Assembly (NCBI GenBank): GCA_965603825.1
Contig: CBFDEM010000028.1
Span: 434,001-498,000 of the forward strand
Length of the DNA stretch: 64,000 nt
Source: Blepharisma stoltei ATCC 30299
Taxonomy: Eukaryota > Protista > Ciliophora
Direction of reading: 5' to 3'
Shown one piece after another: positions 47,539 through 52,477 of this stretch. The position numbers were made by a program, and so were the translations under genes. How positions within the stretch are numbered: position 1 is the first letter of the stretch; each line of letters opens with the position of its first letter. A model generated the notes under the pieces. That model did not search any database. It was not told the DNA's origin and was given only the letters and a program-made list of their open reading frames with translations.

Positions 47539-48303
47539 ATGTTAAGTAGAGCTACTAAACTCTGTCAACTAGTTAGAGTTCCCAGAGCAGCATTTGCCGA
47601 TGAATGGTTTAGAGGAAATAGATACAGTGAAGACGGCGCCCCTTTTTTTGAAACCCCAACAAGGCCTGGAAATTTCAGAGATGTAATGGACTTCAAATTA
47701 AAGCTTGATAATTGGTTTGACGAGGCCCGTGAATTCAACGAAGAAGAATGGGAAGTGAAAAAGGCTCAGCTTTATATTGCAAATTGTATGGGAAACATCA
47801 TGTGGGTCACTGGCTTCCAATATGCAGCAAGCTCGTGGGCACAAATCATTACAGGTTGGGTAAGATACTTCCCAGACAAGTATATGGAATTCGACATAGG
47901 AGAATTGCCTCCTGGTGAAGTCATGCAAATTTCTTGGCATGGTGTACCATTATTTATTAGAAGACTTACCAAAGAAGAAATGGAAGACGAAGGCAAGACT
48001 CCTCCACATACACTTATGGACAGCGCTCACCAAGTCAGAATTACTGACGCTCCAAACTCAAAAGTAATGGTTCTCAACGCTAGATGCACACATTTAGGCT
48101 GTATCCCTATTCCATATATTGGGAAATATAAAGGGTGGACTTGCATGTGCCACGGTAGTATTTTTGATAAGTGGGGAAGAGTCAGACAAGGACCTGCACT
48201 AGAAAATCTAAGATACCAAAACCATTCCTTATATGGGAACATTCTTTGTGTAGATCAGCTACGCTATAACTATGAACCCAGAAGGATATGGATCGTTCAA
48301 TAA
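47539..48303 (+). CDS. UQCRFS1: Cytochrome bc1 Rieske iron-sulfur subunit
   Basis: CTHLGC and CMCHGS boxes, GPA; mitochondrial presequence. Confidence 0.96.
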   Translation: MLSRATKLCQLVRVPRAAFADEWFRGNRYSEDGAPFFETPTRPGNFRDVMDFKLKLDNWFDEAREFNEEEWEVKKAQLYIANCMGNIMWVTGFQYAASSWAQIITGWVRYFPDKYMEFDIGELPPGEVMQISWHGVPLFIRRLTKEEMEDEGKTPPHTLMDSAHQVRITDAPNSKVMVLNARCTHLGCIPIPYIGKYKGWTCMCHGSIFDKWGRVRQGPALENLRYQNHSLYGNILCVDQLRYNYEPRRIWIVQ

Positions 48304-48362
48304 ATAATGGGTTTCTAGATAGAAATGATAACTTTTAGCTCTTAATGATAATTTGAATAATA

Positions 48363-49013
48363 ATGGCAGGAGTTCTTGGCTCAGCTACACCAACAGCAAA
48401 GTTCAAGCTTGTGTTTTTAGGGGACATTTATACAGGGAAGACTTCAATCATCAACCGCTTTATGAATGATACGTTTGATGCGAATTATCAAGCTACAATT
48501 GGCATTGATTTCTTATCAAAAACCATATATCATGAAAACCAGGCCATCAGACTACAGTTATGGGACACTGCAGGACAAGAGAGATTTCGAAGCTTAATTC
48601 CAAATTATATAAGAGATTCATCAGTCGCTATCATTGTTTTTGATGTGACCAATAAACAAACATTTTTAAGCATTGACAGATGGGTTCAAGATGTCAGAAG
48701 CGAAAGGGGAAAAGAAGCATTAATTGTAATCGCAGGGAATAAAATGGATAAGGTCGAAGAAAGAATTGTCAGCTATGAAGAAGCTTCAGAAAAAGCAAAA
48801 GCCCATGAAGGACTATATGTGGAAACGAGCGCCAAAACGGGGGATAATATAAGCCAACTTTTTAAGCAGATTGCGACGTCATTGACGAATGGGAAACCGA
48901 CAGTCACAGCTCAGCCGAATACACCAGAGCAAAGGATTGTGTTGACGAATCCTCCGCAAAATCAGACTAATGAAGCAGCAAGGGCTCAAGATAAGAAAAA
49001 TTGTGCATGCTAA
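48363..49013 (+). CDS. RAB6: Rab6 GTPase
   Basis: KFKLVFLG, YQATIGIDFLSKT, WDTAGQERFRSLIPNYIRDS, CAC terminus. Confidence 0.95.
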   Translation: MAGVLGSATPTAKFKLVFLGDIYTGKTSIINRFMNDTFDANYQATIGIDFLSKTIYHENQAIRLQLWDTAGQERFRSLIPNYIRDSSVAIIVFDVTNKQTFLSIDRWVQDVRSERGKEALIVIAGNKMDKVEERIVSYEEASEKAKAHEGLYVETSAKTGDNISQLFKQIATSLTNGKPTVTAQPNTPEQRIVLTNPPQNQTNEAARAQDKKNCAC

Positions 49014-49094
49014 ACATAAAGTTATTTGAAAATAATTTTAATTAAGGAATATTTTAAATATTTATTAAAATAAAAAGTTATTTAAATATAAATA

Positions 49095-49316
49095 ATGATT
49101 GAGCTATGAGTTATTATTCTTGTTTTATTAGGCATAACTTCAGCAATATTCCTCTCTATCTGAGTTTACTTGAAATTTTTCAAACCAAAGCCTCTCCCAG
49201 AGCTTACTGCACAGCTTTTATATGGATCTGAAATGGGAGATATTGAATTAACTTCTTTTTCTGCTAATCCTAATGCAGAGCCAAGGTACTCAACTTTAAA
49301 TTTTTCAAGAAAATAA
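49095..49316 (+). CDS. 73-aa single-TM microprotein (absent from the ORF track)
   Basis: MIELW(TGA)VIILVLLGITSAIFLSIW(TGA)VYLKFFKPKP...PRYSTLNFSRK then TAA. Confidence 0.65.
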
Positions 49317-49328
49317 TTAAAAAGCTGA

Positions 49329-49844
49329 TTACGGTGATAAATTGGAATCAATATCATTATGTAAAAACGCTCTTAAACTTTTAATTGTCATTTTTCCGTC
49401 CTCAGAATTTTCTTCTGCTCTATGAATAATCCTTCTTGCTTCTTCTTCTCCTGATAAATTTTCGCCCAAAATTTCTGCAAGCTGCATTAAGTCTTGAGCT
49501 TCTATAAACCCAGTCCCTCTCATGTCCATTAATCGAAAACTTTGTGCTAAAGCTTTTTCAAAAACGTCTGGCTTAGATATGGCATCTTCTAATGTTGATA
49601 TAAAAGTGTCGAAATCGCATTCTGATGAACCGTTTAAAAAAGTTTTTGTTTCTGCTACTTGAGGATCTACAGAGTAATCTGATGGAGAAATTTCTTGTTT
49701 GTTTGATTTAGTTGACTCTATGGTTTTAATTAGGTTATTGACGCTTTCAATAGTGATTTTGCCTTCAGAGTTCGGGGAAAATTTTTTAAATGAGTTTTCT
49801 AGCTCTGCTTTTTGATAGTCTGTGAAATGAAATCCTGGTTCCAT
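49329..49844 (-). CDS. Calmodulin/centrin-like EF-hand protein
   Basis: FRLMDMRGTGFIEAQDL..LGENL; ATG at 49844. Confidence 0.82.
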   Translation of the reverse strand: MEPGFHFTDYQKAELENSFKKFSPNSEGKITIESVNNLIKTIESTKSNKQEISPSDYSVDPQVAETKTFLNGSSECDFDTFISTLEDAISKPDVFEKALAQSFRLMDMRGTGFIEAQDLMQLAEILGENLSGEEEARRIIHRAEENSEDGKMTIKSLRAFLHNDIDSNLSP

Positions 49845-49985
49845 TTTATTCAAATACAATTAAAGATATTCTTAGAAGAAAAAGTTTATAAGTATATTAA
49901 AATTGGAAAAATCTTAAGCAAAATCTTTAAACAAGGGTTTTATTTTTTATAAATCACTCAAATTTATAATAAAATTAAATTTTAT

Positions 49986-50903
49986 TTACCATAATGAAGT
50001 ATCTTGAAGGTAGACATTTTGAAACCAGCTGATCGTATAAGGCCTTGAAACGATACTTAAAGGTACCCAAAGATACTTGTTACTCTTGTTATAAGCTCCA
50101 ATAGCATAAACGCCAAGCCAAATCTTGTTATTGGTGTCTTTCCATACACCCCATACCGTTGCAGCATCATAAAACATAGTGGTATTAGTTGGATTATAAA
50201 TTCCATCACTATAATAGGTAGCACCTGAACAGCACATATCATAATCCATTGGAATACTTACTAACCCAAGTCCGTATGAACTTAATCCAGTTGATATCCC
50301 TGCATATGGATTTTTTGCAGTTGTAAAATTGCCAGCCATATAAATTGTCCAGACATAAGGATTATAGCCAGTTGTATTAACAGAGTTCAAATAAGTTGTA
50401 TTGCAGGCTTTAGTTATATCCAATCTATCTGACCAATTAGTATTGTCATAAAAGTAATTGGAAGTGCTGACCAAATCCAAGGCTTCATGGAAATTATATC
50501 TCATTGAGCCAGAACTTGAAGGAGTTTGACAGTTTATTCCGTTTCCACTTGAAAGAACAGCTTTTTCAATTGAGTAAAAGCTAATCCATCTATTGTAGTT
50601 TATATTGTTGACTCCCTTTGATCTTGCTTCCATAAGCCACCATAAGAAGGTTGCTGCTTGAGAGTTTGCATAAGCCCAGCTTGAGGATGGCCAAAGAGAA
50701 GCTGTAGATTGATATAGAGGCATTTCATTCCAGCGTATTTGGCCTGCAACATGGGCAGTGTCTAAGAAAACTGCGTAACAATTAGTCTTGCCTGCACATA
50801 CCCCAGAGTAAGAGCTGCCTTGTAGATCTCTGAGGGGAGGGAGAAAGTCATCATCTGCCTTAAGAAGAGAGACGAGAAGGAGAGAAAGGATTAATTTCAT
50901 CAT
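49986..50903 (-). CDS. Secreted 305-aa inactive papain-like glycoprotein; probable gamone 1 (blepharmone) mating-pheromone precursor
   Basis: Signal peptide, RDLQ, six N-x-S/T sites (NWS, NTT x3, NFT, NKS), papain-like SSWAYA / YYSDGIY / DAATVWG; length and sequon count match my recollection of the Blepharisma gamone 1 precursor. Confidence 0.8.
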   Translation of the reverse strand: MMKLILSLLLVSLLKADDDFLPPLRDLQGSSYSGVCAGKTNCYAVFLDTAHVAGQIRWNEMPLYQSTASLWPSSSWAYANSQAATFLWWLMEARSKGVNNINYNRWISFYSIEKAVLSSGNGINCQTPSSSGSMRYNFHEALDLVSTSNYFYDNTNWSDRLDITKACNTTYLNSVNTTGYNPYVWTIYMAGNFTTAKNPYAGISTGLSSYGLGLVSIPMDYDMCCSGATYYSDGIYNPTNTTMFYDAATVWGVWKDTNNKIWLGVYAIGAYNKSNKYLWVPLSIVSRPYTISWFQNVYLQDTSLW

Positions 50904-51240
50904 TCGAAGATTTATTTCCTCATCTGAAGATCGGCCTTAAATAGAAAAGATACATATCTGGAGGGATTTTGGATCGGCCGTATCCTAGAGTCTGAGAGTA
51001 GGAAAAGTTGATAAAATTGGCAGCTTTAAGGCAGAGAAAAGGAGAGGGTAATGATAATAAATGATCGAGGGGTGTTTAAGAGTGATTCGATAGATGATAG
51101 AGATTGAGAAATTAGGGAAATTAGGAAAATTTTTTAGAAATTTAAAAAATCAAAAGAATAAGAAAAATACATTAGAATGTGGTTTTAGGACTGTCTTAAA
51201 GGATTTTAGGAATAATAATAAGCCCTAACCCTAAAAAGGT
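50904..51240 (-). promoter_or_regulatory. Putative upstream regulatory region of the gamone-1-like gene
   Basis: Strong purine/pyrimidine skew; GATCGGCC twice (50929, 50972); CCCTAACCCTAA 51223-51234. Confidence 0.35.
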
Positions 51241-51490
51241 GAATATTAAGACTTATATGATTAAAAGCATGCAAATTTATGTATGCAAAGAAAATGGATT
51301 TGTTGAAAATTTATAAAGTGCTCAAAATCAAATAGATGAATGTATATTTTTTGCTTTAATGCTCTAATTCATTTCGAGCAAATTATTTAATATTTCCGTT
51401 CTCTAATATTAAATTTAATCCTCATTGTTCATATATCTCGGAATTTTTAAAAATTTACCTCAAATAAGCATATTTATTTCTAGCAAAGAT

Positions 51491-52477
51491 TTAATTTTCA
51501 GTCCTGATTTTAACCCCTAAGCAGAAATAATAAAAGATATTTGCAAGCAACCTCCCCGTTCTGTAATCCTCTATAGCAGGGTTATACTCTGACATATCCA
51601 TAAGCGTCACTTTTCTATTTTTCCCGCTGACAAACCCTACTTCGATCGCTTCTTCAGCTGTAAACCCTCCGTCTACACTAGGGCAGCTAACTCCTGGACA
51701 AAATGCACTATTAATCGCATCCACCTCAAAAGAAATAAAAACTCTATGTTTCTCATCAAATTCCCCAAGCAGCTCTTCCAGCACTTGTCCTGCCTGTGTT
51801 AAAGATCCTCTTATAGACGATTGGGGTGCTATCACTTTTCTTCTGATGCTTGACAGCCAAATTATCCTTCCGCCTTTAGAATTAACATAATCCACATGGG
51901 ATTGTGCACATTGGGAACCTTGTGAGCCAAACTCTATGAATTTTCCACCAAGTTCTGCAAAAGCTGGATCGTCTAATAATATCCGAAAAGCACAGCCAGA
52001 GTGGATACGGCCTTCATCATCAAGATTTCTTACGTCAAGATGAGAGTCTATGTTGATTATGACAGGGATGAAGCTGTTAGCATGGCAGTAGGTCAGAAAG
52101 CCTTTCGAGTCTGGCCATCCTTGGTCTTTGCCACCTCCTATCACAAAAAGATTAGGTTGGCTGGGATCTTGAAGAATCGTTTCTACTTGCTGTTGCAACT
52201 CTTGATGAGCCTCTTCTAAAGTAAGTCCTTGAATATTTCCCGAATCTCCAATGCTAAATTCTTGCAAGCTAATTTCCAGTTCAGGATTTACAACTGGCCC
52301 AAGATTATATATAAATCTTCTCAGCACATCAGGCCCTCTTTCGGTTCCCACCCTTCCTCCATTTCTAGCCACCCCTTCATCATATGGAAACCCTAAAAAG
52401 CAGACATTCCCTGCATTTCCTTTTGTAATTATTGTGCCAAGTTTCGGATCATCTCTTTTAAATAAAGGAGTCGACAT
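51491..52477 (-). CDS. Formimidoylglutamase (arginase/ureohydrolase family, HutG-like)
   Basis: GFPYDEGVARNGGRVG, INIDSHLDVR, HSG, FEVDAI..PGVSCP, EYNP. Confidence 0.88.
   Translation of the reverse strand: MSTPLFKRDDPKLGTIITKGNAGNVCFLGFPYDEGVARNGGRVGTERGPDVLRRFIYNLGPVVNPELEISLQEFSIGDSGNIQGLTLEEAHQELQQQVETILQDPSQPNLFVIGGGKDQGWPDSKGFLTYCHANSFIPVIINIDSHLDVRNLDDEGRIHSGCAFRILLDDPAFAELGGKFIEFGSQGSQCAQSHVDYVNSKGGRIIWLSSIRRKVIAPQSSIRGSLTQAGQVLEELLGEFDEKHRVFISFEVDAINSAFCPGVSCPSVDGGFTAEEAIEVGFVSGKNRKVTLMDMSEYNPAIEDYRTGRLLANIFYYFCLGVKIRTEN

Follow-up and report, generated by a model that had tools for sequence, protein, structure and literature searches.

Gamone 1 (blepharmone) is one of the few chemically characterised ciliate pheromones (PMC9229436), and recent work still describes it as a globular glycoprotein, naming no relatives beyond the heterotrichs (PMC10892320). 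Starved type I cells of Blepharisma secrete the glycoprotein, which acts species-specifically on type II cells (PMC10892320) and prepares them for conjugation and pairing (PMC10892320, PMC9942806). An open reading frame (ORF) on the reverse strand of a 64,000-nucleotide stretch of Blepharisma stoltei ATCC 30299 DNA (the window) raises the questions of whether it is the gene for this pheromone and to which protein family its product belongs. A preliminary description made from the sequence had proposed gamone 1 as the product and a papain fold with a lost catalytic triad as its origin.

The gamone 1 gene and its product

The ORF is intact and uninterrupted, and its translation gives a product of 305 aa with 14 Trp, six Cys (C36, C42, C125, C167, C224 and C225) and six N-x-S/T sequons (N156, N168, N176, N192, N240 and N272). 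The N-terminus is hydrophobic (MMKLILSLLLVSLLKA) and is followed by R25-D26-L27-Q28. Further along the chain lie the motifs PSSSWAY (72–78), YYSDGIY (230–236), DAATVWG (246–252) and IWLGVYAIG (261–269). The length, the Trp and sequon counts, the N-terminal features and the motifs had all been listed in the preliminary description, and every item is present in the sequence.

A protein search matched the product to pre-progamone 1 of Blepharisma sp. YC-IV with 96% identity over 100% of its length (E 1e-197), which bears out the proposed identity, and to pre-progamone 1 of strain EN-II with 77% identity. Clustering at 90% groups the product with B. japonicum gamone 1 (Q8WST5), and its exact sequence is already present in NCBI. 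Gamone 1 of ATCC 30299, a mating-type I strain that secretes the pheromone (PMC9942806), has been reported to have 305 aa, six attachment sites, a UAA stop and no UGA, and to be 95.7% identical to that of YC-IV (Kobayashi et al. 2024, PMC10892320). The length, sequon number, TAA stop, absence of TGA and identity to YC-IV of the ORF all agree with these values, as do the precursor traits given in the preliminary description (about 305 aa and six glycosylation sites). Compared with gamone 1/blepharmone of B. japonicum and B. stoltei (Q8WST5; BAR42577, BAR42573), it is the same gene (88–96% identity, 305 aa) with no material difference from the published one, and represents the allele of ATCC 30299 with its genomic surroundings.

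The gene had been noted once in the window, among housekeeping neighbors. Protein search and family-profile search of the 41.46-Mb genome (64 contigs) found no second gamone 1 copy, so the single occurrence holds genome-wide, and the nearby genes in the window are of ordinary kinds, coding for a Rieske protein, a small GTPase and proteins of the EF-hand and arginase families. These data show that the ORF is the known single-copy gamone 1 (blepharmone) gene of B. stoltei ATCC 30299; the gene itself is not new.

According to the part of PMC9229436 that cites Sugiura and Harumoto (2001), mature gamone 1 has 272 aa. This length implies that 33 residues are removed and that the mature protein starts near G34 (Table 1), which fits the matches to known structures described below, as these start at residues 37–40. 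Only about 17 residues lie between the predicted signal peptide and the mature start, and they form no I29-type or cathepsin-B-type inhibitory prodomain. The pheromone as modelled is a bare peptidase unit.

Table 1. Features of the gamone 1 locus, in window coordinates, with the evidence on which each assignment rests.
Feature	Position	Strand	Basis or remarks
Conserved block directly 5' of the start codon, promoter-proximal or 5' UTR	50904..50995	(-)	Identity to L011; both GATCGGCC octamers of the window lie inside
Gamone 1 (blepharmone) pre-pro-protein gene	49986..50903	(-)	305 codons + TAA; no intron; no in-frame TGA
Probable signal peptide, residues 1–16 (MMKLILSLLLVSLLKA)	50856..50903	(-)	Hydrophobicity; low-confidence model helix 2–16; source name 'pre-progamone'
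Short pro-piece, residues 17–33, with R25-D26-L27-Q28	50805..50855	(-)	272-aa mature length; pLDDT <50 at residues 13–24
Mature pheromone, residues 34–305: one predicted papain-like (C1A) two-lobed domain, six sequons	49989..50804	(-)	AF2, Foldseek, VIA, ESM Atlas
S75 codon, papain catalytic Cys25 position	50679..50681	(-)	Helix start in model; hhalign; family column
D246 codon, catalytic His159 position	50166..50168	(-)	HMMER vs dionain-1; hhalign; family column
Y266 codon, triad Asn175 position	50106..50108	(-)	HMMER vs dionain-1 (VYAIG on KNSWG); family column

Predicted fold and the papain family

An AlphaFold2 (AF2) model of gamone 1, built from a 21-sequence alignment, reached a pLDDT of 82.8 and a pTM of 0.84. 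Foldseek comparison of the model with the PDB, which the preliminary description had suggested as a check, returned 214 matches at E<=1e-3, and the best 50 of the 214 were C1A structures throughout, each with probability 1.00. The TM score was up to 0.67 by target, and the matches included cathepsins B, C, S, K, L, V and X, Der p 1, SERA5, dionain-1 and a Cys-less papain-fold seed protein. VIA-align gave a Z of 15.6 and an rmsd of 3.5–4.0 A with 218–223 residues aligned and 310 chains at Z>=8; residues 38–300 of gamone 1 covered mature cathepsin B from end to end, and helices and strands followed one another in the model as they do in C1A peptidases. A shape search of the ESM Atlas gave Peptidase_C1 clusters in all 10 rows listed (TM 0.56–0.61), and Peptidase_C1 clusters were among the language-model neighbors, at 0.93.

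The model of P0017, a relative 27% identical to gamone 1, also had a pTM of 0.84 and matched cathepsin B with a Z of 15.3; the two AF2 models were built from shallow, mostly shared alignments (21–23 sequences), so neither counts as an independent check on the other. Separate evidence for a papain fold comes from the PDB, Atlas and language-model comparisons. The fold had been proposed from motifs aligned by eye, and it is upheld by two models that match C1A over the whole mature domain (Z 15.3–15.6) and by the Peptidase_C1 rows of the Atlas. Cathepsin B fills the best structural rows, with a lead of at most about 1 Z for gamone 1 and of about 1.5 for P0017; this lead over other C1A structures may reflect just its larger size, and cathepsin B would be no more than a candidate for the specific ancestor.

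At the sequence level, an exhaustive HMMER search gathered 17 proteins, a second Blepharisma gamone 1 cluster among them; 15 were full-length relatives of 265–318 aa and two were fragments of 87 and 203 aa. Relatives beyond Blepharisma were 21–35% identical to gamone 1, and those whose loci were checked lay on gene-dense eukaryotic contigs. A word-indexed search for homologues, started from the family alignment, brought in no further members, and an unannotated 290-aa gene adjoining a relative in L013 proved not to be a paralogue. A Pfam scan of the gamone 1 protein at E<=10 found no family, PF00112 included, and the gamone 1 locus was not among the 105 matches of a genome-wide PF00112 scan. 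The phmmer matches of gamone 1 to PDB sequences, a fucose lectin (E 0.49) and a core protein (E 1.9), were at chance level and were discarded.

The gamone 1 family profile had a sole match among PDB sequences, the papain-family enzyme dionain-1 (E 0.033), and the HMMER alignment set YYSDGIY...YDAATVWG...VYAIG...YLWV of gamone 1 on YSSGIY...DHAVTVVG...KNSWG...GYIWM of dionain-1. The papain register was found again by hhalign with six cathepsin L-like genes from the B. stoltei genome, at values that are not significant (E 0.3–0.37; probability <1%), and the global mode of hhalign against the cathepsin L-like genes of the genome gave a meaningless alignment of 8 columns. The papain link from sequence evidence alone is not significant.

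These observations bear on whether the likeness of the model to papain is artefactual or convergent, with gamone 1 in a ciliate-specific family that does not descend from C1A peptidases. The insignificance of the Peptidase_C1 match in Pfam, the genome-wide PF00112 scan and hhalign would fit such an origin, but the one PDB sequence matched by the profile is a C1A enzyme, aligned in a register that is the same as the order of structural elements, and the invariant Cys pair lands on a conserved papain disulfide. Identity to PDB cathepsins in the structural alignments was just 8–13%; even so, the Z of 15–16 extends over the entire domain, well above the Z of 7–8 that the tool gives as typical for models without a clear match, and the match lists were exclusively C1A (the best 50 PDB matches of 214 and the 10 ESM Atlas rows). 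Although shallow alignments underlie both models, each reached a pTM of 0.84, and language-model features indicate Peptidase_C1 too. We consider an artefact or convergence improbable. The evidence indicates that mature gamone 1 is a papain-family (C1A) domain, and it is the predicted structure that decides this, which sequence methods alone do not.

At least 105 Peptidase_C1 matches lie in the B. stoltei genome, many of them in tandem arrays on C11 (~710–736 kb), C20 (~912–921 kb), C23, C9 and C1. In some of the arrays there are copies interrupted by in-frame TAA or TAG codons; these copies are probably pseudogenes or genes split by introns.

Loss of the catalytic triad and the proposed role as a ligand

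Residue equivalences between gamone 1 and papain were taken from the sequence alignments and the secondary-structure string, not from superposition. S75 opens the long central helix (75–96) of the model, and a non-significant hhalign alignment set SSSWAY on CGSCWSF, with S75 over the catalytic Cys. D246 fell on His159 and Y266 on Asn175 both in the HMMER alignment to dionain-1 and in hhalign. Among the relatives aligned there, the Cys25 position is occupied by S, N, G, I, A or T and in none by Cys, the His159 position by D, Y, A, Q or E and in none by His, and the Asn175 position by Y, L, T or I and in none by Asn; in the wider family the Cys25 position is mostly Gly. The loss of the entire triad, which had been read from the sequence by eye, therefore stands for gamone 1 (S75, D246, Y266) and for every relative aligned there. 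Three of the four papain landmarks aligned by eye were also reproduced, by HMMER against dionain-1 and, for S75, by hhalign. The exception was the pairing of Q65 with Gln19, where the low-confidence HH register gives A68 and Q65 lies 3 residues off; Q65 is conserved in Blepharisma and the nearest orthologue only. The N-terminal register is ambiguous, as the structural match runs from residue 40 and hhalign pairs W58 with Trp7.

In the same hhalign comparison, which is not significant, the family-invariant C125 and C167 aligned to papain Cys56 and Cys95 and P72 aligned to Cys22. No counterpart of the papain Cys153-Cys200 disulfide was seen in the gamone 1 alignment. The syntenic orthologue P0009 is without C36 and C42 together and without the vicinal C224-C225, and it keeps C125 and C167. 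The joint loss of C36 and C42 alongside the retention of C125 and C167 fits a dispensable C36-C42 disulfide and a structural C125-C167 disulfide, and the latter is probably a retained disulfide of the Cys56-Cys95 type.

Gamone 1 might still be an enzyme, with Ser75 as a nucleophile that cleaves or modifies a type II surface protein, as has been proposed for some papain relatives with Ser in place of Cys. S75 is conserved at the nucleophile position among the compared Blepharisma sequences, and Ser-for-Cys C1A relatives such as SERA5 are among the structural matches, but in gamone 1 the general base His159 is replaced by Asp and Asn175 by Tyr. Moreover, Gly predominates at this position in the wider family, with Asn, Ile, Ala or Thr in other members, while the fold and the flanking motifs are kept, which argues that the constraint is structural and not catalytic. 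A retained enzymatic activity is very improbable on these grounds, and gamone 1 is most plausibly a papain homologue that is no peptidase and serves as a secreted signal.

Gamone 1 resembles papain-family peptidases (MEROPS C1A, PF00112) in its predicted two-lobed fold, in which the L-lobe carries the central helix and the R-lobe forms a beta-barrel; this fold is matched over the whole mature domain with cathepsin B as best match. The two have in common the motifs x-W-A, where the central helix begins, Y-x-x-G-I-Y and x-A-x-x-V-x-G, and the region equivalent to the K-N-S-W-G / G-Y-I-x-I strand pair of C1A is matched in gamone 1. Unlike C1A peptidases, gamone 1 has no Cys25, His159, Asn175 or inhibitory prodomain, and it appears from the alignments to have neither the Cys22-Cys63 nor the Cys153-Cys200 disulfide. 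Its L-lobe is longer than theirs, and its score is below every Pfam threshold.

Secreted, catalytically dead proteins with a C1A fold and a replaced nucleophile are also known elsewhere, in SERA5 of Plasmodium (2wbf, 6x42), the Cys-less seed protein of Pachyrhizus erosus (2b1m) and human TINAG/TINAGL1. TINAG and TINAL have been described as inactive papain-like proteins (PMC10318531). SERA5 and 2b1m were among the Foldseek matches to the gamone 1 model. By sequence, these proteins are still recognized as Peptidase_C1, and most of them have the His and Asn. Gamone 1 is far more diverged than SERA5, 2b1m or TINAG, with all three triad residues gone. None of SERA5, the 2b1m protein and TINAG/TINAGL1 is known to be a diffusible mating pheromone. 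The protein pheromones of Euplotes, like gamone 1, are mating signals that ciliates secrete and that vary from species to species (PMC9229436); these Cys-rich proteins of 37–105 residues (PMC9229436) are unrelated in size and fold to the 272-residue papain-like gamone 1 glycoprotein.

In the literature searched, no report links gamone or blepharmone to papain, cathepsin or cysteine protease, and two recent papain-superfamily surveys do not mention ciliates or Blepharisma. The words 'papain' and 'protease' are absent from the 2024 gamone 1 paper (PMC10892320). Within this literature, the papain-fold assignment of gamone 1 appears to be unreported; the gene is known, and dead papain homologues are known as a class. 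The surprise is limited, since folding Q8WST5 could lead anyone to the same conclusion. If correct, the placement traces the evolutionary origin of the pheromone to a digestive-type protease domain that was recruited for signalling, and it provides a structural frame for the species-specific substitutions that have been proposed to drive speciation as well as testable ideas on the binding face and the receptor. Gamone 1 would then be an extreme case among pseudo-proteases, with its whole triad gone and its sequence beyond the reach of Pfam.

We regard it as highly probable that this single-copy macronuclear gene yields gamone 1 as a triad-less papain-family domain that acts as a secreted ligand. 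The precursor would lose about 33 residues, made up of the signal peptide and a short pro-piece. The domain may descend from an active ciliate cathepsin, possibly of lysosomal type, that lost the Cys-His-Asn triad, the large inhibitory prodomain and most of the family disulfides and kept the two-lobed fold. Loss of the triad would leave gamone 1 unable to act as a cysteine protease, and the protein most likely serves as a stable, glycosylated extracellular ligand for a putative receptor on type II cells. Gamone 1 stays active when deglycosylated (PMC10892320).

Binding to the putative receptor could occur through the former substrate cleft. The segments of gamone 1 that differ between species are residues 132–151 and 287–298 (Kobayashi et al. 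2024, PMC10892320). In the HH register, a weak alignment, residues 132–151 fall on papain ~62–82, and by extrapolation past the end of the alignment residues 287–298 fall on ~198–209. We take papain ~62–82 to wall the S2/S3 subsites and ~198–209 to floor the S2 pocket. That the vestigial cleft is the receptor-binding and species-discriminating face of gamone 1 is a speculative proposal, which we think more likely to be wrong than right by a good measure. If it were true, the receptor would recognize gamone 1 in the manner of a protease-substrate, protease-propeptide or protease-cystatin-type inhibitor pairing, and reproductive isolation in Blepharisma would evolve via remodelling of a former specificity pocket. 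Candidate receptors would in that case be surface proteins with propeptide-like or inhibitor-like ectodomains.

Divergence of the gene and its upstream region

The orthologue P0009 is encoded at L011:6001-6948 on Logan contig L011 (SRR24908292, ciliate). Window positions 47539-52477 and L011:1229-9714 share the order and relative orientations of the genes for arginase, the gamone 1 homologue, the EF-hand protein, the small GTPase and the Rieske protein, with an extra methyltransferase gene in L011 between the gamone 1 homologue and the EF-hand gene. Protein identity between the window and L011 was 75–81% for the neighbors compared with 31% for gamone 1 and P0009, and coding DNA identity was 73–77% for the neighbors compared with 56% for gamone 1. 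These differences imply that the pheromone changes far more quickly than the genes around it, as a mating signal would be expected to do.

Directly upstream of the start codon, the block at 50904-50995 was 74% identical to L011:5906-6000 over 95 nt and 83% over the first 50 nt, compared with about 50% farther upstream and the 56% of the coding sequence. Its sequence contains TTTAAG(G)CCGATCTTC...GAAATAAATCTTCGAA. The octamer GATCGGCC occurs twice in the 64-kb window (50929-50936 and 50972-50979), both times just upstream of gamone 1; the chance expectation in the window is about 0.22, and two copies were reached in 2 of 100 shuffles. L011 keeps just the copy proximal to the start codon, as GCCGATC. 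The upstream block may be a shared regulatory element or the 5' UTR of the pheromone gene. The notion that the ORF is a silent or decaying copy, with the active pheromone gene elsewhere, has no observation in its favor and merits next to no credence given the intact, full-length frame, the single genomic copy found by protein and profile search, the secretion of gamone 1 by ATCC 30299 as a type I strain (PMC9942806) and the conserved upstream block.

The B. stoltei gamone 1 gene begins with an adjacent pair of ATG codons (MMKL...; 50898-50903, reverse strand), the first of which is ACG in L011 and the second of which is retained there. To judge by this comparison, translation of gamone 1 may start at the second Met. 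The intergenic region between gamone 1 and arginase is unusually long at 587 bp, and it contains a telomere-like TTAGGGTTAGGG stretch at about 51225-51240 on the reverse strand, some 330 nt upstream of gamone 1; this stretch is not shared by L011.
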